A DNA stretch of 64,000 nt from Marsupella aquatica (Eukaryota > Plantae > Marchantiophyta): assembly GCA_973895155.1 (NCBI GenBank), contig OZ316898.1:5815079-5879078 (forward strand). Reading direction: 5' to 3'. The stretch's first letter is position 1. Each line of letters begins with the position of its first letter. The position numbers and the translations under genes were made by a program. The notes below the pieces were generated by a model, which saw only the letters and a list, made by a program, of their open reading frames with translations, was not told the DNA's origin and made no database searches. Below, one piece after another: positions 18,478 through 62,645 of the stretch.

Positions 18478-18787
18478 CTAGACACCAGAGATAGGCCGGA
18501 ACCATCATTGATCTGGAGAATTTGGTCAAAACCATGGTTGGTCTGGTTAATTTGGACCAGACTAAGAACGCACTTAAGTAGACCAATCTCCAATCGAGAC
18601 CAACGTCGTGAAGGTGTAGCTGACTCTGAAATCATGCGAGACATAAATGGGTTCTTTGATATAATCATAGGGCTAGCCAATGTTCTCGTGGGTACCTGAA
18701 GAGAGACCCTGTGCGCTTACGTTTCGGAGACGAGACCACAATACGAATTGTCAGACTCCCCATAGAGATGTTCCTTCGCCGTGCACT
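18478..18787. repeat. Diverged inverted duplicate of 13789-14073
   Basis: Reverse-complement match to 13789-14073. Confidence 0.8.
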
Positions 18788-39540: not shown

Positions 39541-39542
39541 AT

Positions 39543-39554
39543 TGGTATCAGAGC
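39543..39554 (+). promoter_or_regulatory. Primer-binding site (tRNA-iMet) of the outer Copia
   Basis: TGGTATCAGAGC, 2 nt after the LTR. Confidence 0.95.
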
Positions 39555-41269: not shown

Positions 41270-44200
41270 ATGGCATCCAAGTTTGGAGGTGTCAAGTTTG
41301 AGGTAGAAAAGTATGATGGGCGCACGGATTATTTGCTATGGGAGAAGCAGGTTAAGGGAATTCTTCGTGCTATGGGCCTAGATCATCTGCTATCGACTCG
41401 GGAGGAGTCTAGCAGTGAGGAGGAGATCCCGTTGAGGAAATGGAGGTAAGAGCAAGTGATCGCTATGAATGCAGTTATGTTGTATTTGAAGCCGCATATC
41501 ATTAAGAAGCTGGACGACTACGAGGATTGTGTATCCTTATACAAGGCCCTCAGAGAGAAGTACTACCGAGAAGATGCCTCAGATCGGTTGTACAAGAAGT
41601 CTCTCTTGATGAGCTTGAGGCTAAAAGAAGGAGGCAAGCTTCGAAATCACTTGGATGAATTCGACAGCCTAGCTGTAGATTTGTCAAATCTTGGCAAGGG
41701 AGTGGAAGATGAAGATAAGGCATTGCTTCTTCTCAGTTCCTTACCCCCATCGTATCAAGGTTTGAAGCAGGTTCTCTTGTATAGAGACCTCAAAACCATT
41801 TCATATGATGAGGTGGTAAGCTCTTTGCTGTCAGATGATGCACAGAAGAAACTGGGTCATGCCCAAACACCATCTTCATCTGGCAGTGCATTGAATGTGA
41901 ACCGCGGGAGGACTCAACAGAGGATGACTGGCGAAAACAGGTCTTTTTCATAAACATACCCCTCACGGAATAGAGGCAAGGAGAAGGCTCGGTCTAAGTC
42001 TAGATCCAGGTCTAGAGAGAAATCTCTAGAAAGGAAACCAATTATATGTTGGAAATGTAACAAGCCTGGCCACATGAAACGAGACTGTCGAGTCAAGCAG
42101 ACTCATCAACCATCAGCGAACGCAGCCACTGATGTTGATATGATTGACTTGCTTGATGATAAAATCTTGTGAAGTCCAGATGTTGCCCTTTGCATTTCAT
42201 CCAGTGACAACGGTGATGAATGGATTTTAGATTGTGCCTGTACCTATCATATTTGTTGTATGAAAGAGTTTTTTACTTCTTACTCAGTATCAACCGGTTC
42301 CGTGTTGATGGGGAATGATCATCCTTGTCAAATTGTTGGAATTGGATCCGTGAAAATTCGGATGTTTGATGGAGCTGTGCGAACAGTGAGTAATGTCAGA
42401 CACATACCTGACATGAAAAAGAACTTGATTTCTCTTGGAATGCTGGAAGCAAATGGATGTCGGTGGAGTTCTGCTGATGGTATTCTTCAAATGTCAACCG
42501 GAGGCAAGGTTGTCATGAAGGGTAAGCGGCACAGGAATCTATACTTGTTGGAGGGCAACGTGATTTGTGAAGAAGCCAATGTAACTAGATCTCAAGGCGA
42601 GATGACTCAGTTGTGGCACTGCAGATTGGGACACATGAGTGAAAAGGGTTTGGCGGTACTTCGTAGGAAAGGACTTCTTTCTAATTAAGAATCTACTAAG
42701 CTAGATTTTTGTGAACATTGTGTGCTTGGGAAGCAACACAGGAGAACCTTTGGTGTTGGAACTCACAATACCAAAGCTATACTTGAGTATGTACATAGTG
42801 ATGTGTGGGGTCCAACCCCAACTCCCTCACTTTCTGAAAAATTGTACTATGTCACGTCCATTGATGATTACTCAAGGTATGTATGGATCACATTTCTACA
42901 CGCCAAGTCTAAAGTTTTTGGCACTTTTAAGAAGTGGAAAGCCCAAATTGAGAATCAGACTGGATCCAAAGTGAGATATCTTCGATCAGATAACGGCGGG
43001 GAGTACAGTTCAAGTGAATTTGAACTCTATTATGCAGAGCAAGGGATTACTCATCATCTCACGACAATTTATACTCCTCAACAGAATGGTGTTTGTGAGC
43101 GGTTGAACCGAACACTATTGGAGCGATCGAGGAGTATGTTGAGCCAATCAGGTTTACCACATGAATTTTGGGCTGAAGCTATAAATACGGCCACTTATTT
43201 GGTAAATCTTTTTCCTTCAAGTGCAATCAATTTCAAGACGCCGTTTGAAATGAAGTATGGACGGCACGCAGACTATCAGGTTTTGAGAGTCTTTGGAAGT
43301 GATGCATATGCTCTCACACCTAAGCAGAATCGATCTAAACTAGATTCTACTTCCAAGAAGTGTCTTTTTCTTGGTTATCAACCAAGTGTGAAAGGTTACA
43401 GGCTCTGGGATCCAGAAGCTTGTACGTTGCTTGTCAGTAGAGATGTATCCTTTAATGAATCCAGATCATCAAAGGAGGGGGAGAATGCTCAGGCTTCCCA
43501 TACTGACAAAGGTAAATCTCCTATCCTGGACCATGTTGTGGGGGAGATTGGTCATGAGAGTTTTCATGACATAAATGAAAGAGGTGCTCCGAGAATGGAG
43601 CTGGTTCCAGTAATGGAACAAGAGGAGCAGGCTGTTGTTGGAATACCTCAAATTCAACCAACAGAACAAGATCAACCAGAATTATCAGCTAGAAAATCGA
43701 GACGTACTACTCGAGCTCCTACAAGGTATGGACAATGGACAGATTCATCAAGGTTAGATGATGTTGACATTGCACCTGATGATGATGACAGAGCACTGAT
43801 CTTGGAAGAAGGAGAACCTTCTTCTTCTCATGAGGCGTGCATTTTAGACGAGAAAGATGAATGGAATGCAACGATGCAGAGGGAGTTGCAATCTTTAAGT
43901 GACAACAGAACATGGAAGCTGGTGCAACTGCCAAGTGATCAACAAGTGGTGGATAGCAAGTGGATTTACAAGCTGAAGGACAACTCTTCAGATGGAGGGG
44001 ACAAGATATACAAGACAAGGCTTGTTGCCAAGGGATTCACTCAAGAGAAGGGAGTGGATTACAATGAGGTCTTCTCTCCAGTTGCCAAGTATTCCACGAT
44101 ACGAATTTTGTGTCAACTTGTTGTGTTTTTTGATCTGGTGTTAGATCAAATGGATGTTGTTACTATTTTTCTCTATGGCACCTTGGAGGAACAAATTTTC

Positions 44201-44820
44201 ATGAGGCAACCACTGGGCTTTGTGAAGAAGGGCCAAGAGAGTTTAGTTTGCAGGTTACTTAAGTCCTTGTATGGATTGAAGCAAGCTCCTCGACAGTGGA
44301 ACAAGCGGTTTGATGATTTCATGTTTGCACAAGGATTTACTAGGATGGTGTATGATCCTTGTGTGTATACGAAATCAGTCAAGAATGGTGTGTTTGGTTT
44401 GCTCATTCTAGTGCTCTATGTGGATGACATGTTGATTGCGGCTAAGGATCAAACTGAGGTTGACTCAAAGCAAAATTGAGTTCTGAATTCCGAATGAAGG
44501 ATCTTGGGAAAGCCAAGAGGATCTTAGGTATGGAGACTACGAGGAACTTTGAAACTGGACAGTTGTGGCTGAATCAAGGCAAGTATGCTGAAAAGGTACT
44601 TGCAAGATTCAACATGGAAAATTGTAAGCCAGTAAGTATTCCTTTGGCTCCACATTTCAAGTTATCATCGGTTTTTTGCCCCACGGATCCAGTGGAGAGA
44701 GGCTTGATGACTAAGGTTCCTTATGAGAGGGCAGTGGGCAGTCTAATGTATTTGATGACATGTACCAGGCCTGATCTAGCCCTAGCAATGGGCAAAGTGA
44801 GTAGATTCATGTCAAATCCA
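41270..44820 (+). pseudogene. Outer Copia gag-pol, 5' part (Gag, zinc knuckle, protease, GAG-pre-integrase, integrase, RT)
   Basis: KFEVEKYDGRTDYLLWEKQV, CWKCNKPGHMKRDC, WILDC, LWHCRLGH...CEHC, HSDVWGP, RSDNGGEY, QQNGVCER, YKTRLVAKGFTQ, LYVDDML. Stops at 41447, 41951, 42170 and 42686; frameshift near 44465. Breaks at MSNP. Confidence 0.93.
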
Positions 44821-44821
44821 A

Positions 44822-45150
44822 TGTCACACCATTCTGAGTAGTGTAGTAGTATATCGTGCTATTAGAGTATGTACATTTGGTATGAGTGCTATTGGAGCCG
44901 ATAAGGTTCTGTCAGGTTTGTGTGAGAGGGTACTTCTCACTTGTGAGGCATTGAAAGGTCATCTTTCAATGTTGAGCCTTGGAGAGAGAGGAGCTTGAGT
45001 GTGGCTATGGTGGCTGTGAGCTCCGCTTGTGTAACGTGGATTCCTTGAGTAGTGCAAGGTGCATTGGCTTGACATACGTGTGTGATCGGTTCGGTGCGGG
45101 ATCGATGGGGTATTGTTGACCGAGATCGTTGTGCCGATTGTATGGAGATT
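44822..45150 (+). repeat. Repeat A1 (329 bp) of the Gypsy element
   Basis: Matches 60429-60757 with about 5 substitutions. Confidence 0.95.
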
Positions 45151-45162
45151 ACATTGAAAGAT
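45151..45162 (+). promoter_or_regulatory. Candidate self-priming site (PBS equivalent)
   Basis: ACATTGAAAGAT is the exact reverse complement of ATCTTTCAATGT at 44961-44972 inside repeat A. No TGG-type tRNA PBS is present. Confidence 0.65.
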
Positions 45163-45420
45163 CACATTCGAAATGTGCTGTACGGACTGTGCGGACAGAA
45201 GTTCGATTGATTGAGTTGTTGACGGTTCGTGGTAGCTCGGATCATGTGTTGTTATCGAACAGATCGTTGGTATCTTGACCTGTATCGTTGTTGTCCGATC
45301 GGCCTGCTTCCCGATCGATGTACAGATCTGTGATTGGTGACAGGTTTTGAGTTGGAGGTCGATTGATGATTCGTGGAGGAAAGCGAATGTTGAGTAGATT
45401 TTGGACAGTGGAAGTCGATC

Positions 45421-45510
45421 CGTGAGGCTTCAGATCTGATTGCCGGCTACTGTGAGGCTTCAGATCTGATTGTCGGCTACTGTGGGGCTTCAGATTTGAT
45501 TGCCGGCTAT
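45421..45510. repeat. 30-bp tandem repeat x3 in the Gypsy 5' leader
   Basis: tgtgaggcttcagatctgattgccggctac units at 45421, 45451 and 45481. Confidence 0.9.
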
Positions 45511-45749
45511 TGTTGGACGATGTTGGCAAGGTGTAGGTGAAGCGACGGCTCTTTTCCTGAAGGAACGGAGCTGCCAATGCCCCGTGCGACGGTATCATCG
45601 TTTCAGTGAAAGAAACGAGGGTCAAAGGTGTTGAATCAAGCTGCTGCCAATTCTGTGGAAGGGCTGCGTTTTTCATGAAGGAAATCGACAGTTTTCGGGA
45701 GCTTTTCATGAAGGAAGTAGTTGTTTTTGGGGTTAGGTGTGAGGCGCAC

Positions 45750-46056
45750 GAGGTCACCCATCCCGAAAGTGCTCGCGCAAGGCGACGCGTGAGGTCACCC
45801 ATCCCGAAAGTGCTCCCAACCGCGAACGCGAAGTCACCCATCGCGAGCGCAGGCAGACGCGAGGTCGAGGTCACCCATCCCGGGGCTATTCCGGGCCGTG
45901 AGCGCGAGGGGAGGCACAAGGTCGAGCGCGAGGAGGTCACCCATCCCGGGGCTATTCCCAACCGCGAGCGCTTAACTGGCAAGTTCTCATCCCACCTTGT
46001 GTACACACAAGCTTTGACAACTTGTTGTTTAGATTCAAGCGCCAGGGGGCTTTATA
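45750..46056 (-). promoter_or_regulatory. 5S rRNA-like (type 1) Pol III internal promoter with upstream TATA, plus four extra box-C copies
   Basis: Minus strand 45990-45931 reads ATGAGAACTTGCCAGTTAAGCG-22 nt-GGATGGGTGACCTCCT, with the same spacing as plant 5S box A/IE/box C. TATAAA at 46056-46051. Further GGATGGGTGACCTC copies at 45867-45880, 45791-45804 and 45750-45763, and a variant at 45830-45843. Confidence 0.75.
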
Positions 46057-46517
46057 CATTTCCCGGTTTGTTTAGAGGCCTATTCTAGGCCAAATCAGAG
46101 GCTGTTTTAGGGTTTTTGATACTTCTGAGTCCATCTAGACTCACAGATTGAACCAATTTTGCCTTGGTTCTCATCTACAACATTGGAGTGCCATTGTGAA
46201 GCCTATTATGAAGGCTCTTCCTTGAACCTTATGCACATTGTCATATTGATTTGCATTGGCTTTTGTGTGGAGAGTTGAATGGTATCCATTCTTGTTTCTG
46301 GATCCTCTTCACACATGTTTCCTGTTTATGCGCCATGTTAGTTTCGTGTGGGCGCTTGATTCCATAGGAGTGATCCGGGTTTGCAACTGGACATTCTAGT
46401 GTGCTGTGTATTTCTCTCTTGGTGATGTTGGAGTGATGCCCAACACACCATGGTGAGTGCTTGTGGTGCTGACAGGGATAGATTGCCCTTAGGGTTAGCA
46501 CATAGATTAGGTTAGGG

Positions 46518-48906
46518 TTGGTCACCACGGATTCTTCTGGTGCTATTGGATTACCCGATGGACGACGGACCGGTTTCACTTGGAGTGGGGCACAGTTTCG
46601 GCCAGCGGCATTGGTAGTAGTCAGCAGTGCAGCTTCAGACAGTGATTCTGATGAGGACTCAGTGACCAGTTCTCCTCATCATCAGGTGGTTGCATCTTTG
46701 TTGTGGGATATGGACGAGATGTACGGGGCTACAAAGGGCCCACGACGATACTCTGGTGTAGTTGGCACAATTGATCTGGATGACTTCATCCAGGAGTTTG
46801 ATACGTGGTGCGATATGCAGACATTGCATAACGTCATGTTGTTTACCCCTTTCATGGCATGGAAGGGATTATTCCAGCATTTGGAGGGGCCACCCATGGA
46901 TGACTACCATGAGTTTCGGAAGGCTCATTTGGTTGAGATTGAGGCATGGAGGCAGCATTGGTCGCCTAATTACATGTCCATCACCTATGGCACTAGTGTG
47001 GCTGCCCAACCCATTGCCACAGCTGCTGCTTCTTCTAGCAGCACTAGCCAGAGTGGCACACCATCCACCAGCAGCACTCCAACAGCATCCACCACTACTC
47101 CTGCCGGTGTGATTGTGACAGGAACTAGAGTTGCGCCAGCATTTAATCCTATGGTGGAATTCTTTGAGGTACTGAAGCAGAACTATCAGGGTGTGAAAAC
47201 TGATAAGTTGAAGGGTCTTCAAGAGTTCCAATGCAAGACTGGAGAGAGCCTACGTGAGGCATACACACGTATGCGCAGATTGATCACTGTCACCAAGGGA
47301 GTGACAGAGGCTCAGGCAGTCCAGTTTTGGTATGCAATTCTGGACAGAGAATTGCGACGCAGAGTGAGAGATGTCACTCTGCTTAGGGATGCAGATCCCA
47401 CATTAGCAGTTGTTTTCACCCTTTCTGAGCGCATTGAACTCAATATGGTGAATGAGAAGGTGGTGACTTCCGGATTTGCCAAGGAAGCACCAAAGGCTGC
47501 ATCTACATCCACACCACAGCCTACTGCATGGAAGAGCCAGAGGGAGAAGCCTATTGCACGAGAGTCTACCAGCCAGAGACCTGTGCCCTCTTATGATGGA
47601 CAGCAATCAGGATGTTGGACCTGTGGTGGGGATCATGCACAGAGATATTGTCCAGATCATAGAGGATCAGGGGGAGCATCAGCGACAGTGTAATCACTGT
47701 GGAGCTCCTAGACACACCAAGGATAGGTGTTTCTCACTCCACCCTGAGTTACGGAGAGGAGGATCCCGTACACATGATCAGGGAAGAGGAGGAGGAGGTA
47801 GAGGTGGTGGACGTGGTCGTGGCATGCCACATGCAGGGAGACAGGGAGGTGACGCTGCCCCTGCTGTAATCATAGATCCAAAGGATGCTAAGATTGCTCA
47901 ATTGGAGCAACAACTAGCTGCCATGGCTAGTTCCCAGGTGAGACCTAATTCTGGTGATGGGGCATCTACATCCTATGGACCTTCCACATCCCATGGTCCT
48001 TCCACATCTTATGGAGCTGATGGAGACCTTGCCACCATGGGATTCATGTGTGGCACTGCACATATTGATGCATCAGCAGCTTTGACACATGGGGCAGCCA
48101 AAGCTCTTGAGCCCCGAGGAGCAGTAGTGGAGTTAGATCCACAAAGGGGGGATGCACGTCGGCAGATAAAGCTTCCTCAGTCTTTTACATTGTCAGAGAC
48201 AGTTTAGACTGCCTCTATGAACCCGGTTCGGACAAACCCTGATGTGGGTAAGTTGGCAGAATCAAGTAGTGATGCAGTAGGGATGACAGGTACCTTGCTG
48301 GGGGCGGCTACTGCCATAGTACGCACCCCATTATTTTCAGCGACAGACATGCTGAACTTGGCAGTTGGTCCTGCAGAAGTGTTCAGATTGGCAGCTACAC
48401 TCTGTGAGGACACTCCAGTGGTTGCTTCCCATGCAGAAGCAACTTGCAGTGTTGATGCAGTGAAGACCATGCCACCTACTGCTACTAGTGAGACATGGCA
48501 TGCAGCAGCAGCGAGGTTGGTGGATTTACCAACACGCCCTGCATTTGAGAGGACTAGGTTTAAACCTAGTGTTGTGTCATTGGATAATCGGAGTGGTATC
48601 TTCCGATTAGTTGGGCCTCCTGGAGCAGTATACCAGCCAGAGAGAGTGTTACTGGATACTGGTGCTCAGCCCTTGATGTTGGGGAAGTCTGCCATACGTG
48701 GATTGGGATTGCGTCCAGAGGATTTGGAGGATTGTCCCTTTCCCATTCAGACTTCATTGGGGGGACCTACACCTACACAGCATATCACCAGGAGACCACT
48801 TGATTTGAGGATTCAGGAAGGTCATACCACAGATAGCTCACAGATACAGGCGCGAGCTATTCTGACTAAGGCAGAGTCATATGATGTGTTGGAGGGATGT
48901 ACAGTG
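46518..48906 (+). pseudogene. Gypsy gag (two CCHC knuckles) and aspartic protease, interrupted by the inner Copia
   Basis: Retrotransposon gag QCKTGESLREAYTRMRRL; knuckles CWTCGGDHAQRYC and CNHCGAPRHTKDRC (frameshift ~47690); in-frame TAG at 48205; protease VLLDTGAQPLMLG. The frame CTV|LYPMGF rejoins across the Copia insertion. Confidence 0.88.
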
Positions 48907-49327
48907 TGTTGAGCATAGACGACGATCGCAACGGCAAGCCCATGAACCATCCAACGCACAATAGTCGACACAAGAGATACGTGGTTCACCTCCTTGAGGC
49001 TACGTCCACGGGAACACACAAGAGAGCTTTACTGAACTCTAAGCCCGTCGGCTATACCGAGTCTCCACAGTGTAAGCTCTCCCTATCTCTCAAGTGGCTC
49101 CATAACAATGAGCCTTGGTTCTACCTCTCCAAGCACACATGCCTCTTATGATATAGTGTGCAACTTAGTTGTACCTAACCACATAGTTGTACCTAATCAC
49201 GTAGTTGTACCTAACCACATAGTTGTACCTAATCACGTAGTTGTACCTAACCACGTAGTTGTACCAACCCACGTTGTTGTACCAACCACGTCATACCTAA
49301 CCTAGACGTAAGAGTAAATACCCAACA
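48907..49327 (-). repeat. 3' LTR of the inner Copia (contains an 18-bp tandem array at ~49166-49290)
   Basis: Identical by eye to 54980-55400. Confidence 0.97.
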
Positions 49328-49518
49328 ATCTTCCCCTTGACTCTGGTCTAGGGGAGAGTAATACTGCCAATGTATATGATCCCTCAGCGGGAAGTTCTGG
49401 ACAGAAACCAAACCGGTTTCCCTCTCTAACTAGAGCAAACCAGAACTAAGCCGTAGCCTAATACATAGGAATGAGGAAGAGCATATATCAGTAATTACAA
49501 TGAATGTTTAAGAAAACT

Positions 49519-52500
49519 CTACTTGTGATGCAATTGCAAAACCTGCAATACGTCACGGTGTCTAGAGAAACTCTCCAAAGGAATCACTTTGGTAAATGCG
49601 TCAGCCGGGTTGAGTTTACCATCAATCTTGACTAGCTCAAACAAATTATCAGACACAGCCTGCCTGATAAAATGGTACCTGACGTCAATGTGCTTCACTC
49701 TGCTATCCATCACCTGGTTCACAGCAAGGTGGAGTGCACTTTGACTATCACAATGGAGCTTCACATTCCCCTGTGGCAATCCCATTTCAGTGATAAGTCT
49801 ATCCAACCAAATCGCTTCCTTTGCTGCTTCCGCAGCTGCAACATACTCTGCTTCTGTAGTAGACTGAGCAATACACTTCTGCAAAGTAGACCTCCAACTT
49901 ATGCATCCACCGCCAAGTGTGAACACGTATCCTGTTGTTGATCTCCTTCGGTCCAAATCTTGTCCATAGTCAGAATCTACATAGCCAATCAATGATCTAG
50001 CATTCTTTGCATTCGCATCAAATAAAAGACCATGATCCACGGTACCCTTCAAGTACCTGATAATCCACTTCACTGCTTCCCAGTGTACCTTCCCTGGATT
50101 CGACATGTACCTGCTCACCTTGCCCATAGCCATGGCAAGATCAGGTCTAGTGCAAGTCATCAAATACATGAGACTCCCCACTGCCTTGTCATATGGAACC
50201 TTTGACATCAACCCCTTCTCTGTGTCATCCGTAGGACAGAACGCTGATGATAACTTGAAGTGTGGAGCCAACGGGGTACTTACTGGCTTGCTATTCTCCA
50301 TGTTGAACCTTGCAATTACCTTCCTCGCATAACTGCTCTGCGTCAACCATAGCTTGCCAGCCTCCAAGTCCCTAGTGATCTCCATACCCAAAATCCTCTT
50401 AGCTGGCCCTAAGTCCTTCATCTTAAACTCTGCACTAAGCAGTGCCTTGAGCTTAACAATCTCAGACCTATCCTTGGCTGCAATTAGCATGTCATCCACA
50501 TAAAGTACTAAAACAATGAACCCAAAGACAACATTCTTCACCGGTTTCAAATACACACAAGGGTCAAATACACTTCTGTGAAAACCTTGTGACCGAATCC
50601 AATCGTCAAACCGCTTGTTCCACTGTCTTGGTGACTGCTTCAACCCATACAAGGATTTCAGCAATCTGCAAACCAATTCCTCCTGTCCTCTCTTCACAAA
50701 ACCTAGCGGTTGTCTCATGAAGATCACCTCTTCCAATGTGCCATAGAGGAAAGCTGTGACAACATCCATCTGATCTAGGAGCAGACCAAACATTACAACA
50801 AGTACACACAATAGTCGTATTGTAGAGTACTTAGCAACTGGTGAGAAGACCTCATTATAATCCACACCTTTCTCTTGTGTGAATCCCTTTGCTACCAATC
50901 TAGCCTTGTAGACCTTCGATCCACCTCCTATGGAATTATCCTTCAGCTTGTAAATCCACTTGCTGTCCACCACTTGCTGACCCTTAGGCAGCTTAACAAG
51001 CTCCCAAGTTTTGTTGTCCTTTAGTGACTGCATCTCCGTTTGCATTGCTGCAGTCCACTTCTGCTTCTCCTTTGAAGCACTTGCCTCATGAAATGAAGAA
51101 GGTTCTCCTTCTTCCAAAATTAACGCATCACCCTCATCATCAGCTGTAAAATCATCCTCTTGCAGTTGAGATGAATCAACCCACTGTCCATACCTTGATG
51201 GAGCGCGTACAGTGCGACCAGATGTTCTTCTAGCCGATGACTCCGGTTGATCTGCGTGTGCTGGTACAATTTGAAGCTCAACAGCATCCACTTGCTGCTC
51301 ACCAGCATCAACAAACTTCTCTGGTTCCTCTGGCACAGGAACCAGCTCCATAATTGGAGCAACTCCTTCTCTCCGGTCATGCACCTCATAACCAATCTCC
51401 CCTCAACGAGATCCGGGATAGGAGATTTTCCTTTGTTAGTACGGGAGACCTGAGTATTCTCCCCCTCCTTCAATAATCTGGATTCATTGAAGGAAACATC
51501 CCTACTGACAACGAGCTTACAGGCAATAGGATCCCATAGCCTATAGGCTTTCACACCACTCTGGTACCCAAGAAAAACACATTTCCTGGAGGTAGGATCC
51601 AACTTGGTCCTATTCTGCTTTGGTGTGAGAGCATATGCATCACTTCCAAAAATTACCAAGCCATGATAGTCTGCTTGCCGCTTATAGCGCATCTCAAACG
51701 GCGTTTTGAAATTGATAGCACTAGAAGGAGAAAGATTTACCAAATAAGCTGCGGTATTGACAGCTTCTGCCCAAAATTCTTGTGGTAAACCTGATTGGCT
51801 CAACATACTCCGTGACCGCTCCAACAGTGTCCGATTGAGCCTCTCAGCGACACCATTCTGCTGCGGAGTATAAACTGTGGTGAGATGGCGAGTTATCCCC
51901 TGTTCTGAACAGTACTCTTCAAATTCCATTGAAGTGTACTCCCCGCCGTTGTCTGACCTCAGACTCTTCACCCTTGTATCCAAACACTTGATCGTGTTTC
52001 CAGTCTGATTCTCCACCTGGGCCTTCCACTTCTTAAAAATGGACAAGACATCAGACTTATGTGTCATGAAATAAATCCACACAAATCTTGAGTAATCATC
52101 AATAAATGATACATAGTACAACTTTCCAGAGTGTGAGGGAGTCGGGGATGGACCCCACACGTCACTATGTATGTACTCAAGAACCGTTTTGGAACGATGA
52201 GTTCCAACACCAAAAGCACGACGATGCTGCTTTCCAAGAATGCAATGCTCACAAAACTCTAATTTACAAGATTGCAAATCAGAAATGAGTCCATTCTTCC
52301 GTAAGATAGCCAAACCCTTCTCACTCATGTGGCCTAGCCGTGAATGCCACAGTTGAGTCATCTCCTCGTGAGACTTGGTTACATTGGCCTCTCCACATAC
52401 AGTATTGCCCTGTAACACATACAAATTCTTTTGTCTACTCCCCTTCAAAATCACTGTCTCTCCCGACCTGACTTGAAGTTCACCATCAATAACGCTCCAT

Positions 52501-52790
52501 TGATGACCATTTGAATCCAACACACCGAGTGAAATCAGATTCTTACGCATGCCAGGTACATACCTGACTCCGGATACTATGCGCACAGCGCCATCAAACA
52601 TTTGAATCTTCACAGACCCAATTCCCTCAATTTGACAGGAGTGATCATTTCCCATCAGAACTGAACCGTTTGAAACAGAGTAAGAACTGAAAAACTCACG
52701 AATGTAACAAATATGAAAAGAGCAAGCACAATCAAGAATCCACACATCATCTGCTCTCCTAGATGACGTGCACAGGGCATACCCCCGGCT
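49519..52790 (-). CDS. pol: Inner Copia Pol (PR-IN-RT-RNase H), one frameshift near 51400
   Basis: WILDC, LWHSRLGH...CEHC, HSDVWGP, RSDNGGEY, YKARLVAKGF, LYVDDML, GYVDSD, HIDVRYHF, NPADAFTK. ORFs 51120-52745 and 49519-51384 join through a G-run that is one base short relative to the outer Copia (GEIG motif). Confidence 0.92.
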
Positions 52791-53825
52791 TCATAAAACA
52801 TACTCATCATTGAGTAAATCAGCTTCTCCATCAGCCCTAGCCACATTTGCCGATGAAGTTTCCGCTGCCTTTCCCTTACAGTCTCGCTTGAAGTGTCCAA
52901 CTTGGTTGCACTTCCAACATGTCACCTGCCTCCTCTGAGGGGATTTACCCTTGGACTTAGATCTGGATTTAGATCTAAACTGGGTTCTACGGTCCCCAGT
53001 TGGTCGCTGCATACTCCTCCCACGGTTAACATTGAGGGCAGCACCAGATGATGAAGGCTGTGACGTGATGTGCATCTTCTGCTGAAGATCATCACTAAGC
53101 AGAGAACTTGCCACGTCATTGTATGAAATGGTATCCCTATCACGATGCAACAACACTCGTGATAGGGACTGGTAAGATGGAGGCAATGAACTAAGAAGCT
53201 GCAGAGCCTTCGTCTCATCATTCAAAGTCTCCCCAAGGTTTTCCAAGTCAACGACCATATCGTTGAAAGCATCCACATGGTCTTGCAACTTCGTACCAGA
53301 TTCCTTCATCCTGAAACTCATCAGTTTGTAGGAAGTGTAGAGCCGGTTCGACAACTCCTTGCGGTGATACTTGCTCTGCAATTCCGCAAACAAGGACATG
53401 CAATCCTTATGTGCACCTAACTGCTTGATGATGGGAGGCATGAGATAGAGTGTAACACACCACACTCCCTGCTCCTGCATGCGGTCCCATTGTTTCTCAT
53501 CAACATCATCTTCACGAGGGCTCAGCAGTTGGCCCATCCCTGACGCATAAAGCACTCCCTTCACCTGCTTCTCCCATAGCAAGTAGTCAGAGCGCCCATC
53601 ATACTTTGTCACTTCATACTTGGGTCCCCCAAGCTTGAAAGTCCCCATCTTCTTCTTTACCGTGAGCTCCGGTAGTAGTACTGCTTCCTCCACCACACGC
53701 CGCACCAGTGATGGTATCGGTGTCACGTGCTCTTCCTCCTGCTCCTCTCTCTGCCCCTGAAACCTCCGCGGTGATCCTCGTGCTTCAAGTTCCACGTCTT
53801 CGAAAAACTCCTCCGAATCACTCAT
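52791..53825 (-). CDS. gag: Inner Copia Gag (344 aa) with zinc knuckle
   Basis: KYDGRSDYLLWEKQV, LLSSLPPSY, CWKCNQVGHFKRDC; ends at a TGA in frame with pol. Confidence 0.92.
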   Translation of the reverse strand: MSDSEEFFEDVELEARGSPRRFQGQREEQEEEHVTPIPSLVRRVVEEAVLLPELTVKKKMGTFKLGGPKYEVTKYDGRSDYLLWEKQVKGVLYASGMGQLLSPREDDVDEKQWDRMQEQGVWCVTLYLMPPIIKQLGAHKDCMSLFAELQSKYHRKELSNRLYTSYKLMSFRMKESGTKLQDHVDAFNDMVVDLENLGETLNDETKALQLLSSLPPSYQSLSRVLLHRDRDTISYNDVASSLLSDDLQQKMHITSQPSSSGAALNVNRGRSMQRPTGDRRTQFRSKSRSKSKGKSPQRRQVTCWKCNQVGHFKRDCKGKAAETSSANVARADGEADLLNDEYVL

Positions 53826-54979
53826 ATGAGAAAGTCACAAAAAATGTTGTTTTTCACAACTTCTCAAAAAACTCGAAACTCAACACCGCCGCGTAGCCCA
53901 CAAAGCTAGGAGTCCAATACTGAAAACCAAAATCAAATTTGAAATTTGACGGAAAAGTTATTCAAATTTCGGTCGAGGTGGGTAAAACCTTGGGAAACTC
54001 CCCCGTTTTGACCACCTCAGGGAATAACCGAAATACCAAGTACAACCCGTTGTCGGAATTGCGATGTGATTGGTGCGCTGCATTGCCAACTTCAATGGCT
54101 ACGACCTCGCCAAAAAATAACCAAAAAAGTTACCGTTCGGCGGATGAAATCTTTGTCGGACGGTCAAAAAATAGCTCTCTGGTTTTTTGGAATATTCTAT
54201 GACCCTTGTACAGGCCCTGTGGGAATTTTGGAAGAACAATCGAGGGGCTGACATGTGTCCTCGAACCCCCAAAACCCCCTACCACCCTTCGTCGTCGAAA
54301 TCTGGTCGCGCGCGCAGAAAATACACACGGCAGAATGTACCCCTCGACACCAAACGCAAGATATCTCACTCGGGTTTTGACGAAATCAAGATCCGATTTC
54401 AGATTTGGAAACTAGACTCCGAGGCGATGAAGATCGATATAAGAAGCACCCAAAACGAGGAAAGAACGAGGGAGAAAAAAATTGGTAAAGATGACAGATT
54501 TCTCTCAATTGCCATAGCCAATTTCGAATCAGTTTTTCAAAGAGAAAAAAATGGTACCTTGTCAACAACGAATGTTGATCAATTGCACTTGGTGCCGTCA
54601 CCAAGTCCAACAAGGTAATTGATTTTGCTTAGCCTTCCTCTTTGCATCAAAGAGCCAATCCCGGACTCAAAAACAATCGTCTTGCCTCAATCTCTCCGTT
54701 GAGTCAAAACACTTGACGCTTCTCCCTCCGAGTCGATTGCCAACTTTCTTCACAAAATCCAGAACGACGAAAACTTAGATCTCTCTGCACCACGAGCTCC
54801 GTTCAATGATTTCTTCACACCGTTAGAAAACTCTTGCCCTGATCTATCCGTTGAGCCCATAAACTCCAAGTTCCATGCGATGGAACTCTGGATAATCCAC
54901 CAACACTCAACGCTGGAAAAACCGTCATGAAATCCCGTCACGAACACACGTCACCTCCCAAGCATGCTCTGATACCAAT

Positions 54980-55400
54980 TGTTGAGCATAGACGACGATC
55001 GCAACGGCAAGCCCATGAACCATCCAACGCACAATAGTCGACACAAGAGATACGTGGTTCACCTCCTTGAGGCTACGTCCACGGGAACACACAAGAGAGC
55101 TTTACTGAACTCTAAGCCCGTCGGCTATACCGAGTCTCCACAGTGTAAGCTCTCCCTATCTCTCAAGTGGCTCCATAACAATGAGCCTTGGTTCTACCTC
55201 TCCAAGCACACATGCCTCTTATGATATAGTGTGCAACTTAGTTGTACCTAACCACATAGTTGTACCTAATCACGTAGTTGTACCTAACCACATAGTTGTA
55301 CCTAATCACGTAGTTGTACCTAACCACGTAGTTGTACCAACCCACGTTGTTGTACCAACCACGTCATACCTAACCTAGACGTAAGAGTAAATACCCAACA
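54980..55400 (-). repeat. 5' LTR of the inner Copia
   Basis: TG...CA; followed on the minus strand by the tRNA-iMet PBS. Confidence 0.97.
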
Positions 55401-55861
55401 CAGTGCTCTACCCCATGGGATTTATTCTTGATTTTTGGGAGGAATCAGTGTCATATAGACCTGATTGGCAGTCAGGAGATGCTCGATTGAGCAAATTGCC
55501 AGTGAGATTTAGTGGACCTGTGGGAGGCCCTAAATCCACACCATTGTCTTTGGCAGCATTCAGTGGTGTAATTGCTGGACCTGATGATTTGATTGAGGGT
55601 AATGCGCATGCAGCCGATGTTCCACCATTGGAGGAGTCTCATGAGGAGCACATCATGCGAGGATTACCTGTTGGCAGTGTTGTGCCACCAGTGTGGGGCA
55701 CTGCACAGGCCTTGCCACAGGCAGCAGCACGATTGGTACATGATGCATGGCGTCATGCTTTTACACCATAGTCAGGAGCAGAGCAGTCTCTTGCAGATGG
55801 ACCTGTGACTCTTTCACCATTGGATACCACTCCTATTGCTTGGCAGTATCCACCGGAGGGT

Positions 55862-56812
55862 ATTTGTTTGTTGGATCTTTTTGGTGGGATTAGCACTGGA
55901 TTGGCTGTTGTTCTTCAGGCAGGAATTCCTGTGCGTCGTTATTTGTATGTGGAGACAGATGAGACAACACGGAGGGTCTCATTGCGACATGTGGCTATAT
56001 TGGTGGATAGATATCCACAGTTGCTGCCATTGGATGTTGTTCGTGGTTATCAGCATGCACTACATGCTGATATTTCATTGCTGGGGGCGGATCATCTACA
56101 TCGTGTTGGCCCCATTGATTTGGTGATTGCTGGTTGGCCATGTCAGGGCCAATCTAGAGCTGGCATTGGGCATGGACTTCATGATCCACGCTCTGCATTG
56201 TTTTGGGAGATGTTACGGGTGTTGCGTCATCTCCAGCTACATCAAACACAGGCTCCAGCATACATTTTGGAGAATGTGCCATTGTTAGGTGATGATCGTA
56301 GTCGGATTGTTGCCAGTGTTCACCAGGTGAGGTCTTGGATTGGACCTGCTGTGTTATTGGATGCTGCACGTGTGGGTTCTCGTGCACATCGTCCATGCTT
56401 GTGGTGGACTAATTTGATCCCATGTGAGGTGCTGAAGCGCGCATTTGACAGCATTCCACGCTCACCAGCCTTAGTGGTGGATGATATTTTGGATCCAGGG
56501 CGTCGTGCACAGGGTGTGACCCAACCTGATAGACCTCCATTGGCAATGGTCAATGCATTTGGGTGCCCACGTTGTGCATTACCCACTCTTGTAAGCCACT
56601 CTGTTTCATATGCATTCAGAGCAGGTGGCCTTGGACTTGTATGGGACACAGCTCTCCAGCAGTTAGTGGAGCCTACTGCTGATGAGAGAGAGCGTGCTAT
56701 GGGATTTTTGACTGGCACCACTGCAGTTGCCTCTGTATCACAGGGTTTGCGGCGCCAGGTTCTTGGTCAAGCAATGGATTTGAATTGTTTGACTTAGATT
56801 ATCAGCTTGGGA
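55862..56812 (+). pseudogene. DNMT3-like DNA (cytosine-5) methyltransferase domain within the Gypsy pol
   Basis: Motif I LDLFGGISTG; II YVETD; III ADI; IV IDLVIAGWPCQGQS (catalytic PC); VI ILENV; VIII SRAHRPCLWWTN; IX ERERAMGF; X RRQVLGQAM. Same frame as the protease tail and RT, broken only by point stops. Confidence 0.92.
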
Positions 56813-57145
56813 GTAGCTGAACAGTTGCGGATGCGCTCTGCCGGAATTACTGATTGTCCCTTGGTGAGCTTGCGGTCCACTGAGACAGTATTGACCATAG
56901 CTGGGGGCGAGCAGACAGTCCATGGACCTATGACAGGATTGGCGGCTGGACAGATTGTTCAGCAGGAAGGGACTGCTCAATCTACTGCTAAATAGCAATC
57001 ATTGGCTATCTCTTCTACCCTACAAAGAGATATTAGGGATTTGGTGGAGAGTTGGGAACCACAGCTTGGCCCTAAGTTAACAGGGGAGGAGAGACGTCGC
57101 ATGCATTGATTCCTGAAGAGTTATTGAAATTGTTTTGCATTCAGC

Positions 57146-58470
57146 ATGAAGGATTTGGGGACATTGAAGGGCACTGGTATTCAGATTGAATTGGCTAGTG
57201 ATGCGCCAATCTTTCGTAGACCATACCGTTATAGTGACATGGAGAGAGCTCTGATTGAAAGCAGAACTCAAGATTTGTTGGAGGCTGGATTGGTGGAGAT
57301 TTCATATGGGGAGTATGCATCTACCACAGTGATGCCAGCCAAAAAAGATGTGCATGGCAATTACACAGATAGGCGCATGTGTGGTGATTACAGACCTATT
57401 AATCGCCAGACAAAATCTGATCGATATGCCATGCCCACACCTGAGGAGATCTTTGATGCTGTGGGGCATGCAAAGGTTTTCAGTTCATTGGATCTGAGGG
57501 CAGGGTACCATCAGCTTCCAATTAGGCATGCTGACAGGTCCAAGACAGCATTCTGGGGGATTGATTCTTATGGCAAAGATCGTTTGTATCAGTGGTTATT
57601 CTTACCATTTGGGTTGAAGAATGCACCAGCTGAGTTCCAAAGAGTCATGGATCGAATCCTTGCAGGTTTGGATTTTGTCAGATGTTATATTGATGATATT
57701 TTGGTCTATTCTTCTACTGTGGAAGAACATCAGCAGCACTTGCAGATTGTGATGGAGAGATTGAGAGCACATGGGTTGAAGCTCCATCCTAGCAAGTGTA
57801 AGTTCTTCCAAGACCAGATTGAGTATTTGGGCCACACTATATACCCAGGGGGATTGGGTGTACAGCAGACTAAAGTGGAGGCCATTACACAGATTCCTTG
57901 TCCTACTGATGTGAGTAGAGTTCGTGCATTCTTGGGATTGGCGAGCTACTACAGGAGGTATGTTAAAGGATTTAGCCAGCTTGCTAAACCTTTGACCATA
58001 CTCACTAAGTTGGATCAGGAATGGATTTGGGGTGATGACCAGGAGCATGCCTTTCAGGAGTTGAAGCAAAGGTTGGCATCATCCCCTATTTTGAGAAGAC
58101 CCATTTCATGCAGACCATTTCAGCTACACACTTGGAGTGGAGTAGGACTTGGAGCAGTGCTGACTCAGAAGGATGATGAGGGGAATGAGTTTGTTGTGGC
58201 TTATGCCAGTAGATCAAACAATTCAGCAGAGGCTAAGTATAGCTCTTATGAGGGAGAGTATTTGGCAGCAGTGTGGGCTGTTGCACACTTTCGTTGCTAC
58301 TTGTTTGGTAACCCCTTCACCTTGATCACTGATCATCAGCCTCTTAAGTGGTTAATGGAGTCTGACAAGCTTACATGGAAGCTTGCACGATGGGCATTGT
58401 TGTTATAGGAGTATGATTTCCAGGTGGTGCATAGGCCTGGAAAAGTGAACTTGGATGCAGATGGATTAAG
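57146..58470 (+). pseudogene. Gypsy reverse transcriptase and RNase H
   Basis: RMCGDYRPIN, LDLRAGYHQ, KTAF, LPFGLKNAPAEFQR, YIDDILVYS, FLGLASYYRRY, GLGAVLTQ, VAYASR, TDHQPLKWL, HRPGKVNLDADGLSR; TAG at 58406. Confidence 0.93.
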
Positions 58471-58698
58471 CCGCAATCCATGTACCAGTCAGCAAGATGA
58501 GACTGGAGCTAGATGGCATGATGAGTCAGATAAGGAGATGGTGCCAGGATGGCATGCATCTGCCTTTCTTTGTTGGGTGCCAGCATACAGTGGATTTGTG
58601 GACTCTACCTCATTGGATGGAGTGGATGATGAGTTTTCAGATGTGGATGTTGGTGAGGTAACTTCTGGACAGCAAGATATTCACAATGATGTGAGAGT

Positions 58699-60117
58699 GT
58701 GGAATATCTGCGCAGTAGTTCTATTGTTGGCAGTGTTGATGCCAAGGAACGTGACAGGGTTCTACAGAGAGCCAAGAGCTTTCGATGGGAGGGAAACCAT
58801 CTTTTGAGAGTATTGCATGATGGTAGGATGTTGGTGGTACCAAAACCATCACAACGAGTACATTTGGTGCGACATGCGCACGAGGAGTTGGGTCACTTTG
58901 GTGTGAAGCGCACTTACAGCTTGCTGCAGACATAGTATTGGTAGCATGGTATGCACACTCATGTCCAGCAGTTGATAGCTAAGTGTGTGATATGTGATAG
59001 AGTGAGAGCATCATTTAATGCTCCCACTCCCCAGTTGCACCCGTTACCGATCATGGGTTTGGGATATCGTTGGAGTTTGGATTTTGCTGGTCCATTACCT
59101 CTTACCCAACGTCATAATCGGTATGTTGTGGTCATGGTGGAGCACTTCTCCAAGTGGATTGAGCTAGTGGCGTTGCCAGATAAAGCCAGTGGAGGAGTTG
59201 CTGCTATATTTTTGGATCGTGTACTCAGTCATTTTGGAGCACCAGCTGAGGTGTTGACTGATCAGGGAACTGAGTTCCATGGAGAGTTTGAGAGTTTGTG
59301 TGAACAAGCTCTGATTGATCATCGCACTACCTCTCGTGATCATCCTGAGGCAGATGGATTAGCTGAGAGAGTTGTGCAAACTGTGAAGAGAGGATTGCAT
59401 AAGTATGGCTTGCAGATTGGTCATCTGGGAGATTGGGATCTCCAGCTACCTTGGTTAGCTATGGGCTACCGTTTCAGTCGGCAAGCATCACTTGCATCCT
59501 TCTCACCCTACTTTTTGCTCTATGGTAGAGAGCCAGATTTGCCAGCAGCTATTCGTCGTCATGCTGCACCAGTTGTGAACTTGGATGATCCTGATGTTTG
59601 GGTCAAGGTGTGTTCAGAGAGAGCACGGGTATTTCAGAGAGTGATGCCCATGGCTTTTGACAACCTTGCCATTGCCCAACATCGTGATACTTTGAGGTAT
59701 GCCACTATTCGTGGAAGAGGTTACCGTGCAAGCATTCGACGATTTCATCCTGGTGATCATGTTTATTTACAGCAGACAGCACCCACGACACTTGATGTGA
59801 CCACAGGCCGGACAATCTTACGTGTGCGTGAAGTGTTGCCTTCTGGTGTCCTGATGTTGGAGGGACGCGATGGTATGGTTTGGAAGGATCATGTGCGCAA
59901 TTGTGCACCATGTCACCTTCCCAACATTGATAGTACAGTAGATCCAAGCTTGGCACATGTTCGTGCTGGCTTGAAATGTATGTTGTGTAGAGCTGCTCAG
60001 GGAGCAACTACTATGTTGATTTGTGATAAGTGTTCTAGAGGATGGCACATGTCATGTTTGACACCACCATTGCAGGTGATTCCTAGTGGATCATGGTTGT
60101 GTCCTCAGTGTCAGTGA
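58699..60117 (+). pseudogene. Gypsy DDE integrase with C-terminal PHD finger
   Basis: HHCC zinc domain (HEELGH...CVIC); D in SLDFAGP, D in LTDQGTEF, E in GLAERVV; C4HC3 PHD CMLC...LICDKCSRGWHMSCLTPPL...WLCPQC at 59977-60111. TAG stops at 58933 and 58942. Confidence 0.92.
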
Positions 60118-60277
60118 AGCCGACTAGTTATCATTTGTGTTCTCTTGGCAGATATGGATTGCAGGTAGGTGATCGATGGGGCTCACTTGCATCCGGCTTC
60201 CTGATCTTCACACCTAAAAAGGTGTATATCAACCTTGTAGAACTCATGGCTAGCTAGAGTTAGGGGACCTTACTCCC

Positions 60278-60289
60278 AGCTAGGGGGGC
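60278..60289 (+). promoter_or_regulatory. Polypurine tract of the Gypsy element
   Basis: agctaggggggc immediately precedes repeat B1, with an imperfect hairpin upstream (60250-60283). Confidence 0.75.
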
Positions 60290-60896
60290 GATTGTGGGCT
60301 TTGGACATGTGTGAACATGAGTTCCACTTGTATTCCATTCTTGTATTTGTGATGTGGCAGTGTGACTATGTCTGGATGTATGTGACAAGCGATGTATGTT
60401 GTGTAGCGATATGTATGCGCACGACAGCTGTCACACCATTTTGAGTAGTGTAGTAGTATATCGTGCTATTAGAGTATGTACGTTTGGTATGAGTGCTATT
60501 GGAGCCGATAAGGTTCTGTCAGGTTTGTGTGAGAGGGTACTTCTCACTTGTGAGGCATTGAAAGGTCATCTTTCAATGTTGAGCCTTGGAGAGAGAGGAG
60601 CTTGAGTGTGGCTATGGTGGCTGTGAGCTCCGCTTGTGTAACGTGGATTTCTTGAGTAGTGCAAGGTGCGTTGGCTTGACATACGTGTGTGATCGGATCG
60701 GTGCGGGATCGATGGGGTATTGTTGACCGAGATCGTTGTGCCGATTGTATGGAGATTGATTGTGGGTTTTGGACATGTGTGGACATGAGTTCCACTTGTA
60801 TTCCATTCTCTTGTATTTGTGATGTGGCAGTGTGACTATGTCTGGATATATGTGACAAGCGATGTATGTTGTGTAGCGATATGCATGCGCACGACA
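60290..60896 (+). repeat. Right terminus of the Gypsy: B1 (60290-60426) - GC - A2 (60429-60757) - B2 (60758-60896)
   Basis: B1 and B2 differ by about 4 substitutions and a 2-bp indel. A2 matches 44822-45150. The B1/A2 junction is the palindrome GACAGCTGTC (60423-60432). Confidence 0.95.
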
Positions 60897-61475
60897 CCAG
60901 GGAAGGTACATTGGGAGGCTGTGAAATGGATTCTCAGGTATCTTAAGGGCACAATAGACTATGGTCTGCTGTTTGATAGTAGTTCAAACAAAACCAAATC
61001 TTTGGTTGGCTATGTAGATTCTGACTACGGAGGCTGTCTGGAAACAAGGAGGTCAACTACTGGGTATGTCTTTACTCTTGGAGGAGGATGCATAAGTTGG
61101 AGATCTATCTTGCGGAAGTGTGTATCTCAGTCTACTACAGAAGCAGAATATGTTGCAGCAGCAGAAGCAGCAAAGGAAGCAATTTGGTTGGATAAGCTGG
61201 TCACTGAGATGGGATTGGAGCATGGAAAAATGACTCTTCATTGTGACAGCCAAAGTGCGCTTCACCTAGCTATTAACCAGGTTATGGATAGCAGGGTGAA
61301 ACACATTGACATCAGGTACCATTTTATTAGGCAAACAGTGTCTGATAAAATGTTTGAGCTAGTCAAGATTGATGGAAAGCTCAACCCGGCTGATGCTTTT
61401 ACCAAAGTGATTCCTTTGGAGAGCTACTCAAGACACCGTGCTACTTTGCAAGTTTTGCATTTGCAACACAAGTAG
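60897..61475 (+). pseudogene. Outer Copia pol, 3' part (RT tail and RNase H)
   Basis: PGKVHWEAVKWILRYLKGT, GYVDSD, STTEAEY, HIDIRYHF, NPADAFTK. Confidence 0.93.
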
Positions 61476-61679
61476 AGTAACTTAACAATATGTAATTTCT
61501 ATATATGGGTTACTCAATCCTGTTATGGCTACGGCTTAATTCTAGTTAACCTTTAGTTAACCTTAAATGGTTTTTAGGGGGACACCTATGGTTTTAGGTG
61601 ATTGTCTAGAATTTCCCGCTGAGTATCTCATATGGATAGTAGAAATTGCAGTCCCCAAGACTAGAGTCAAGGGGGAGTT

Positions 61680-62011
61680 TGTTAAGGATTGCTCTTAGTC
61701 TTGTGACTCATAGGTTACGACACTTAGGCTAACCACAGTTAGGATCTTAGCTGAGTTTAGGTTAGTCGTGTGTGACCTTGTATATACCAGGGCTAGTGTA
61801 AGTCGCTGGTGGGTGGTGCTTACTCATTGTAACGGAGCAACTTGAGGAAGAAGGAGAGCATGTATGTTCGTCTACTCTTGAAGTAAAACTTGAGTGTTCG
61901 TGTGGACGTAGCCTTGGAGAAGAGGTGAACCACGTAGAGATTGTGTCGACTACATGTGCATGGAATGAGTCATGGTTGTATGGTCGTTGCGAATGACGTC
62001 TTAGTTCAACA
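61680..62011 (+). repeat. 3' LTR of the outer Copia, preceded by PPT aagggggag (61669-61677)
   Basis: Matches 39209-39540. Confidence 0.97.
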
Positions 62012-62645
62012 TACCCCCCATGCCTCCCCATTGGTCATAAGAATGTCCAGACCCAATACCAGAGTTCTTGGTTGAGGCCTCAACCAAGGGGGTTGCCCTA
62101 AGTGTTGTCCATGGGGAATGCAGGGCCATTCCAAAAGGGTCACAGTTGGGATGGAAGGGGAGCACATTAGGAGGTATTGGGGCCAGGTAGAAATAGAGAG
62201 TTAATTAGTATAATCCACTAGCCCAATGCGGGTGCATGGCACAATTGTAGTTGATAAGGCAATGCCCATCAAATAAGACAAAGGAATATACATGAGACAA
62301 TGAATGTTATTGGGGGCAGTGTTATTGGGGCCAATGAAGTCATTGGAGCCCAAAAATGTCATGGACGCAAACAAAATGATTGAGGACTAAAACTGCCATG
62401 GAGGAAAGGAAGTGTTGGAGTGGGTGTTACTGATGCCAGAGTTGATGCAAAACCTAGTCATCCGCCAAATCAGGCCATGGCAGTATGTGGTGCTGCTCAA
62501 CACACATCAGGAGGGTGAGCAAGGGTGAGCTAGAGTTGCAACAAGTTTGTCCATGGGGAGGGGGAGGTGATGTGAGGGACAGGCCAGGCCGGATCAAGAT
62601 GGGCAAGGGTTGGCTGTCATTTTTTCTACTTTTCCCCATATTTCC

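Follow-up and report, generated by a model that had tools for sequence, protein, structure and literature searches.

An unusual Ty3/Gypsy lineage of Viridiplantae with permuted long terminal repeats and a candidate route of integration through a palindrome inside the repeat

How does a retrotransposon with the genes of a Ty3/Gypsy element come to lie in a chromosome with its long terminal repeat (LTR) split and rearranged? The question is raised by an insertion at positions 44822-60896 of a 64,000-nucleotide stretch of DNA from the liverwort Marsupella aquatica (GenBank assembly GCA_973895155.1, contig OZ316898.1, positions 5,815,079 to 5,879,078 of the forward strand), which is referred to here as the window. 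An initial annotation, made from the sequence without database searches, had described two repeated segments, A and B, in the order A1-internal region-polypurine tract (PPT)-B1-GC-A2-B2, and this layout was borne out. In a repeat comparison of the window, A1 (44822-45150, + strand) and A2 (60429-60757, +) are 98.5% identical across 329 nt, B1 (60290-60426, +) and B2 (60758-60896, +; the right end of the insertion) are 95.7% identical with a single 2-nt indel, and no further A or B copies are found elsewhere in the 64 kb. Two complete, identical LTRs around an internal region are absent: the 5′ side consists of A only and the 3′ side of B-GC-A-B, as in seven other genome copies described below. 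The 16-kb span had been read as one Gypsy element, which requires correction, as about 6.5 kb of it (48907-55400) is a younger nested Copia element and the Gypsy itself measures about 9.6 kb.

The dinucleotide GC between B1 and A2 completes a palindrome, GACAGCTGTC, at 60423-60432 (GACA-GC-TGTC), whereas A2 and B2 abut with no gap. A1 begins with TGTCAC and both B1 and B2 terminate in CACGACA; the termini of the window Gypsy are thus TGTCAC...CACGACA, and the GC spacer of the palindrome is missing at both genomic ends. These ends support the proposal that the inserted termini derive from the LTR-internal palindrome, of which the 60423-60432 sequence would be an uncut copy. The target-site duplication (TSD) of roughly 4 bp noted earlier was found to be CCAG at 60897-60900 on the right side and CCAA at 44818-44821 on the left, with three of four bases matching and a single G>A transition between them. 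Its length is set at 4 bp because the homologous, unfilled site in the nested Copia, a relative at 74-78% identity of the Copia into which the Gypsy was inserted, reads ..AATCCAGGG.., from which the left copy was originally CCAG as well. Both the TG..CA termini and the short TSD of fixed length are those of Ty3/Gypsy elements.

Split direct repeats of the form A...B-A-B are a hallmark of the DIRS order (PMC5890265, PMC8557442), whose members PAT, Ngaro and TOC1 are arranged as A1...B1-A2-B2, and on this ground the insertion could be read as a DIRS-, PAT- or Ngaro-type tyrosine-recombinase element with Gypsy-like genes. DIRS elements employ a tyrosine recombinase and make no TSD, in contrast to the DDE integrase, TG..CA ends and 4-bp TSD of this Gypsy family. 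No match to Phage_integrase was found in the open reading frames (ORFs) of at least 120 aa in the window copy or in the polyproteins of intact relatives. What is present is the rve core of a DDE integrase followed by a C-terminal PHD finger (58951-60117, +; PF00665 4e-13, PHD 1e-10), with relatives carrying the Integrase_H2C2 zinc finger in addition, and TG..CA ends with a constant 4-bp TSD are the footprint of a DDE enzyme. The identification of the enzyme as a DDE integrase by the initial annotation is upheld, and we see next to no prospect for a tyrosine-recombinase reading. By its genes, integrase, ends and TSD the element is Ty3/Gypsy; it is DIRS-like in repeat layout only.

Is the arrangement a property of one copy or of a family? 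Relatives were recovered by reverse transcriptase (RT) in Calypogeia fissa (83% identical to the window RT), Marchantia (57%), Klebsormidium nitens (49%) and Closterium (45-49%), and by integrase-PHD in 614 clusters at E < 1e-30 that extend to the chlorophytes Haematococcus and Scenedesmus. The DNA around the relatives' proteins was chosen by homology, blind to repeat structure. Eight assembled-genome copies were resolvable, namely the window copy, two from Calypogeia (L001, L088), three from Closterium (L005, L089, L092) and two from Scenedesmus (L090, L091), and the layout A...B-NN-A-B was found in 8/8; copies without interpretable terminal repeats (Marchantia L002, Haematococcus L003, metagenome L006 and Closterium L087) stand outside this count. 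Perfect 4-bp TSDs flank L001 (ATGT), L088 (CTTT), L005 (TCCA; all of its repeats are 100% identical), L090 (CGGC) and L091 (GGGC), bringing to six the copies with a 4-bp TSD when the window is included. The expectation of common ends and a 4-bp TSD in all copies holds where ends are intact; in L089 and L092, which are represented by 3′ halves only, no TSD was seen. At the border of B1 and A2 stands GACA-AT-TGTC in L001, GACA-GC-TGTC in L088 and L005, and the core CA-GC-TG in L090 and L091, and the CA-NN-TG core recurs there in L089, L017 and the metagenome contig L004. Wherever the palindrome is intact its spacer is 2 nt long and self-complementary (GC or AT), a constancy that fits symmetric recognition, and B is always the shorter arm (96-211 nt).

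A further 80 metagenome loci, probably from mosses and with many duplicates among them, were found by integrase alone. A first classification at ≥80% identity missed nearly all of these copies, which were recovered by mapping a library of A and B segments. After deduplication, the integrase is followed immediately by B-A-B in about 21 distinct metagenome copies, and 10 others close with a single B; contig L004 is organized as unit-genes-unit-unit(start), the unit being B-GC-A carrying GACAGCTGTC. A one-off rearrangement, an aberrant reverse transcript or an assembly artefact has nothing in its favor beyond the oddity of the layout. Layout, ends, length of the TSD, palindrome and priming sites are shared by numerous independent insertions across no fewer than four genera, and the window repeats, having diverged by 1.5-4%, are no assembly duplicate; for practical purposes such an accident can be dismissed. 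Other copies with ordinary LTRs or random termini, which the initial annotation had named as the outcome that would mark this copy as exceptional, were not found in the liverworts, Closterium, Scenedesmus or the metagenome (probably moss) members. The permuted layout is a family-wide trait of an old Viridiplantae Ty3/Gypsy lineage, of which the window copy is a decayed member.

Understanding how such a provirus arises requires a definition of the LTR as reverse transcription makes it, and for this the priming sites are informative. The PPT, AGGGGGG(C) (AGGGGGGC, 60282-60289, +), directly adjoins the start of B1 and is conserved in L001, L088 and the metagenome copies. Immediately 3′ of A1 lies ACATTGAAAGAT (45151-45162, +), a putative primer-binding site (PBS) that is the exact 12-nt complement of ATCTTTCAATGT (44961-44972, +) within A1; a self-complement of this length at that position was equalled by only 2 of 20,000 shuffles of A1. 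Four other members have a self-complement at the A border, different in sequence in each: 14 nt in Calypogeia L001, 12 nt in Calypogeia L088, 13 nt in Closterium L005 and 10-12 nt in Scenedesmus L090. In all four the primer covaries with the PBS, in the three liverwort copies it does so while the adjoining TTGAGCC motif remains constant, and primer and PBS pair in the predicted folds of all five elements. Such covariation provides good support for placing the end of U5 at the end of A, and hence for B-NN-A as the reverse-transcription LTR, with B1 as its 5′ part, including the start of U3, and A1 as its 3′ part, comprising the end of U3, R and U5. For this unit the PBS lies beside U5 and the PPT beside U3, as in Ty3/Gypsy elements, and the earlier definition of the LTR as B+GC+A is supported.

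We suggest that the site following A1 is a self-priming PBS of the Tf1 type, a putative assignment that is new for this family, and that the RNA may begin at the self-primer. Other assignments were considered and set aside. The sequence after A1 lacks the initial TGG of a transfer RNA (tRNA)-type PBS, and the exact self-complement of 12 nt that borders A1 was preferred to that assignment. Some 120 nt downstream of A1 stands a TGGTATC, whose match to a tRNA-Met type PBS extends over only 7 nt, and it was likewise dropped. The possibility that A+B is the true LTR, with a truncated 5′ LTR and an extra B, was rejected because the PPT/B1 and A1/PBS borders are conserved in every lineage. As a separate observation, the self-primer is preceded by its own complement in two liverwort copies, forming a hairpin of 9-14 bp within A (window 44949-44972, where 44949-44957 supplies the other arm of a 9-bp stem; L088 about 3991-4014); no such hairpin is present in L001, L005 or L090.

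If the LTR is B-NN-A, the observed provirus corresponds to a linear complementary DNA (cDNA) with its termini joined and one palindrome opened. We favor, with reasonable though not strong confidence, a route in which a DDE integrase opens the LTR-internal palindrome while the true cDNA termini are joined to each other, giving A-genes-B-A-B; we infer each of its biochemical steps, the RNA start and the cause of the 5′-LTR bias discussed below from the sequences of integrated copies. RNA would start inside A1, and its first ~12 nt would fold back on the site just 3′ of A1 and prime the minus strand as in Tf1, with the PPT 5′ of B1 priming the plus strand. The linear cDNA would then be B-NN-A-genes-B-NN-A, with termini unlike integrase ends. 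Integrase would instead recognize the ..CA-NN-TG.. palindrome within the LTR, which resembles two abutted LTR ends, and two 3′-processing nicks after CA, one on each strand, would amount to a double-strand break leaving CA-3′OH ends with 2-nt 5′ overhangs, the very substrate that 3′ processing by a DDE integrase ordinarily produces. The opened ends may be inserted with a 4-bp stagger, the overhang bases being lost on repair, which would leave the genomic ends without the spacer. Imprecise joining of the true cDNA termini, either before cleavage, as a 2-LTR circle, or after it, would create A2/B2. Use of the palindrome in the PBS-proximal (5′) LTR would yield the only permutation able to replicate again. 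The initial annotation had proposed integration through a circular intermediate at an internal attachment site. The geometry agrees with that proposal; the circle itself is deduced, a linear cDNA that is cut first would give the same product, and events could have run in at least three orders, only one of which passes through a circle.

The joint between A2 and B2 bears directly on how the termini were united. In the window it reads ..GGAGATT/GATTGTGGG (60751-60766), the end of U5 followed by the start of U3 with 0 bases lost or gained relative to the A1/PBS and PPT/B1 borders, and these borders support the claim that the joint represents two cDNA termini brought together. Exact joints are also found in L005 and L092, whereas other copies deviate by -2 nt (L001), -1 nt (L088), +2 nt (L017) or a 4-nt filler (L091), so that the invariant A/B junction predicted earlier gives way to a net variation of -2 to +2 nt among copies, some with filler. 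Most telling are the two Scenedesmus copies, which are 99.6% identical in A and 100% identical in B, yet have the joints ..CCCTG/TGTGCAG.. (L090) and ..CCCT-atcc-TGTGCAG.. (L091). Since the joint differs between near-identical copies, it is not inherited through RNA and must be remade at each insertion by imprecise end joining. A fresh joint at each insertion is expected if the RNA ends inside A2, as B2 would then never be copied from B2.

It is also conceivable that the joint is made by reverse transcriptase itself, the plus strand switching from the U5 terminus to the U3 terminus and copying B as far as the palindrome, without blunt ligation. The one-sided addition of B behind A would follow naturally from such a switch, and template switching can gain or lose a few bases, as at the observed joints. 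The idea is purely theoretical here, it is not obvious what would keep the minus strand from making the mirror-image switch, and the templated-looking 4-nt filler of L091 is equally compatible with host polymerases; we accord it a slim chance. Four other schemes were discarded on reasoning, as each should yield A-genes-B and not A-genes-B-A-B: cleavage before the second strand transfer, a roadblock to strand displacement formed by integrase, second priming sites, and an open circle like that of caulimoviruses.

A second constraint comes from the permutation that is missing. All of about 14 resolved 5′ ends consist of a lone A, and a scan of all loci for short-range A...A pairs 5′ of the coding region, together with the A/B segment map, returned 0 cases of A-B-A...B. 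Consider a symmetric 2-LTR circle, closed by host end joining and opened by integrase at either of two identical palindromes at random. Its geometry fits the observed copies and an imprecise joint fits host end joining. From two identical palindromes, A-B-A...B should arise as often as A...B-A-B, and the A-B-A-genes-B form, though unable to replicate again, could be inserted and should be visible equally often; the 8/8 genome copies and the ~21 metagenome copies are all A...B-A-B. Even in the worst case, with all 8 single-B copies whose 5′ end is unresolved counted as A-B-A...B, the ratio would be about 29 to 8. Random opening of a symmetric circle seems to us improbable. Of the alternative permutations that had been predicted, A...B copies were found and A-B-A...B was never seen (0 of ~14 resolved 5′ ends).

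The absence of A-B-A...B implies that something steers integrase to the PBS-proximal palindrome. Our guess is that the 5′ palindrome is the earliest to become a stable duplex: once the second strand transfer is over, ~0.5 kb of synthesis would complete the 5′ LTR, while the 3′ LTR would stay single-stranded until the plus strand had traversed the entire element. Methylation was dropped as a cause of the bias, as the palindrome with an AT spacer has no CG or CHG site. If the 5′-LTR palindrome were cleaved on linear cDNA and its ends inserted, the host could join the original termini afterwards, and no circle would be needed. The product would be the same, the small deletions and fillers at the joint resemble break repair, and a palindrome near a free end, B being the shorter arm, might be favored. 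Joining last would exact a costly chromosome break at each insertion, and the same 5′-LTR bias goes unexplained; we consider this sequence of events unlikely, if somewhat less so than the random opening of a circle.

The sequences show how these elements are built and that the build is conserved, that primer and PBS covary, that the joint varies and that the alternative permutation is missing. Several points weigh against the proposed opening of the internal palindrome with joining of the cDNA termini. Every intermediate, be it the circle, the cDNA ends or the RNA ends, is deduced from anatomy alone, and the missing A-B-A...B form forces upon the proposal an added and unexplained bias toward the 5′-LTR palindrome. 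About 10 distinct copies end in a single B, two of them with a lone A upstream (L038 and L086, in which B ends in ..GACA and is followed by unrelated flank); such A-genes-B copies may be primary products of cutting both palindromes, or may be later deletions between B1 and B2. The palindrome is not readable in many metagenome copies, which are too decayed. Finally, the window copy is dead, as its coding region is broken across several ORFs by stops or frameshifts.

The internal region of the window copy conforms to its assignment. The stretch 45163-48216 (+) comprises a leader, with short tandem repeats at 45425-45510 (about 29 nt, three times) and 45750-45973 (41 nt, four times, with the core GAGGTCACCCATCCCG), and gag-like ORFs without a Pfam match (46518-47693 and 47476-48207). 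The protease region (48217-48906, +; weak Asp_protease_2 match) is interrupted by the nested Ty1/Copia (48907-55400, - strand), whose two 421-bp LTRs are 100% identical and which duplicated 5 bp of target, CAGTG. A C5 cytosine DNA methyltransferase domain lies in pol 5′ of RT (55805-56797, +; PF00145, E = 4.5e-11), and RT with RNase H follows at 57146-58408 (+; RVT_1 5e-35, RT_RNaseH 1e-29), ahead of the integrase. The pol order is that of Ty3/Gypsy elements, protease-RT-RNase H-integrase, with only a weak protease match at 48217; intact relatives show this order too. The Gypsy was inserted into an older host Copia (about 39411-44821 and 60897-62027, +), within its pol between ..SRFMSNP and GKVHWEAVK. 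Since the nested Copia is young and 74-78% identical to this host, the Copia family was active long after the Gypsy copy died.

The pol of streptophyte members encodes a protease, a Dnmt-type methylase, RT, RNase H and a DDE integrase with a PHD finger. The C5 methyltransferase is found in pol of Closterium L005, metagenome L006 and Scenedesmus P0223 as well, and nearly all members examined for it combine the methylase with the permuted layout; in the pol of L004 it was not detected. Its position varies. It lies between protease and RT in liverwort and Closterium members (window 55805-56797; L005 8948-12139), and between RNase H and integrase in a Scenedesmus member (residues 1956-2053 of P0223), which points to two captures or a rearrangement. 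L004 has two extra ORFs (661 and 192 aa, no Pfam match) between pol and PPT at 12150-14759, possibly additional genes.

The surroundings of other copies add a few observations. Both Scenedesmus copies (L090, 8562-8759 and 21252-21410; L091, 14150-14337 and 27151-28373) lie inside arrays of a ~172-bp tandem repeat, which may reflect target preference, perhaps through the PHD finger, or merely a site of survival. The same flank follows the terminal B in two diverged pairs, L027 (after 5981) with L080 (after 7385) and L014 (after 2720) with L058 (after 11492), and each could be either an old segmental duplicate or a repeated insertion at the same site of another repeat. Closterium L089 also holds, beside the permuted element, a conventional chromodomain Gypsy (15919-21463) whose 369-bp LTRs are normal and 98.4% identical, so that the two arrangements contrast within one genome. 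Within the last 25 nt of B, L089 and L092 have a long purine run 4-8 nt before the terminal CA, and L005 a shorter run about 11 nt upstream; no counterpart was seen in the liverwort or Scenedesmus copies.

The layout itself is already on record. In 2018 the legend to Fig. 4c of de Mendoza et al. (PMC5890265) described KnitGypsy-Dnmt3 of Klebsormidium nitens as having DIRS-like A-coding-B-A-B repeats with Gypsy domains; neither PBS, PPT, palindrome nor TSD is reported there, and no mechanism is offered. KnitGypsy-Dnmt3, compared here by its published description, combines a Gypsy-type pol with a Dnmt3-type cytosine methyltransferase; the window copy has the same layout and a PF00145 domain, and differs in coming from a liverwort and from a lineage found also in Closterium and Scenedesmus. 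Gypsy-7a_cRei of Chlamydomonas reinhardtii (PMC9940879) bears a PHD finger and is an active element in laboratory strains, one of which has acquired 86 new insertions. The legend to its Fig. 6A mentions 'LTR subparts' and a left LTR without the last 8 bp of the right LTR, and by this description it may be a relative with a very short B. We found no paper that mentions the palindrome, self-priming, joint or integration route of these elements. What is new here is the putative self-priming PBS with its covariation, the variable joint made afresh and the missing A-B-A...B permutation.

Parallels for the individual steps exist in other systems. Self-priming of the Tf1/Sushi type calls for ~11 nt at the start of the RNA that complement a PBS adjoining U5. 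In Tf1/Sushi elements and, by prediction, in plant Tcn1, the RNA 5′ end folds on a PBS beside U5 as minus-strand primer (PMC6317226), and the ~12-nt complement at the putative U5-adjacent PBS of the window family is similar; those elements have ordinary LTRs and a chromodomain, in contrast to the PHD finger of this family. Among retroviruses, the integrases of prototype foamy virus and human immunodeficiency virus type 1 cleave the palindromic LTR-LTR junctions of 2-LTR circles (PMC1180852, PMC1905944). To that extent the likeness is close, a DDE integrase cutting an internal ..CA-NN(NN)-TG.. palindrome of abutted LTR ends. The retroviral palindrome arises where the cDNA termini meet, and its cleavage does no more than restore normal linear DNA. 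The family described here has its palindrome within the LTR itself, and its cDNA termini meet in a non-palindromic junction that persists in the provirus.

In the standard account of retroviruses and LTR retrotransposons, integrase acts on the two termini of a linear cDNA, and a 2-LTR circle leads nowhere. A provirus of this lineage could not be made by that route, as it keeps joined cDNA termini inside and takes its ends from an LTR-internal site. Bacterial insertion sequences (IS) offer a comparable chemistry. In IS3, IS30 and IS911 circles, an rve-related DDE transposase takes as its active substrate the inverted ends, abutted across a spacer of 2-3 bp; these are DNA elements without reverse transcription, and their junction is transient and not kept in the integrated copy. 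We think the chances about even that an ancient DDE lineage, ranging from chlorophytes to liverworts, never integrates linear cDNA ends, and that a permanent attachment palindrome of abutted ends, obligate joining of the true termini and built-in use of the 5′ LTR only constitute an obligate circle-type, IS-like pathway within Ty3/Gypsy.

Software for finding LTR elements seeks two matching terminal repeats, and elements of this kind will be missed or mis-annotated; the main plant classification (PMC6317226) makes no mention of permuted-LTR elements. With a cytosine methyltransferase and a PHD finger in the family, its biology touches on epigenetic silencing. If the proposed route is correct, these elements would provide a natural case of end-joined cDNA as a productive substrate, and would connect the integration of retroelements with the chemistry that rve-related bacterial insertion sequences perform at their circle junctions.

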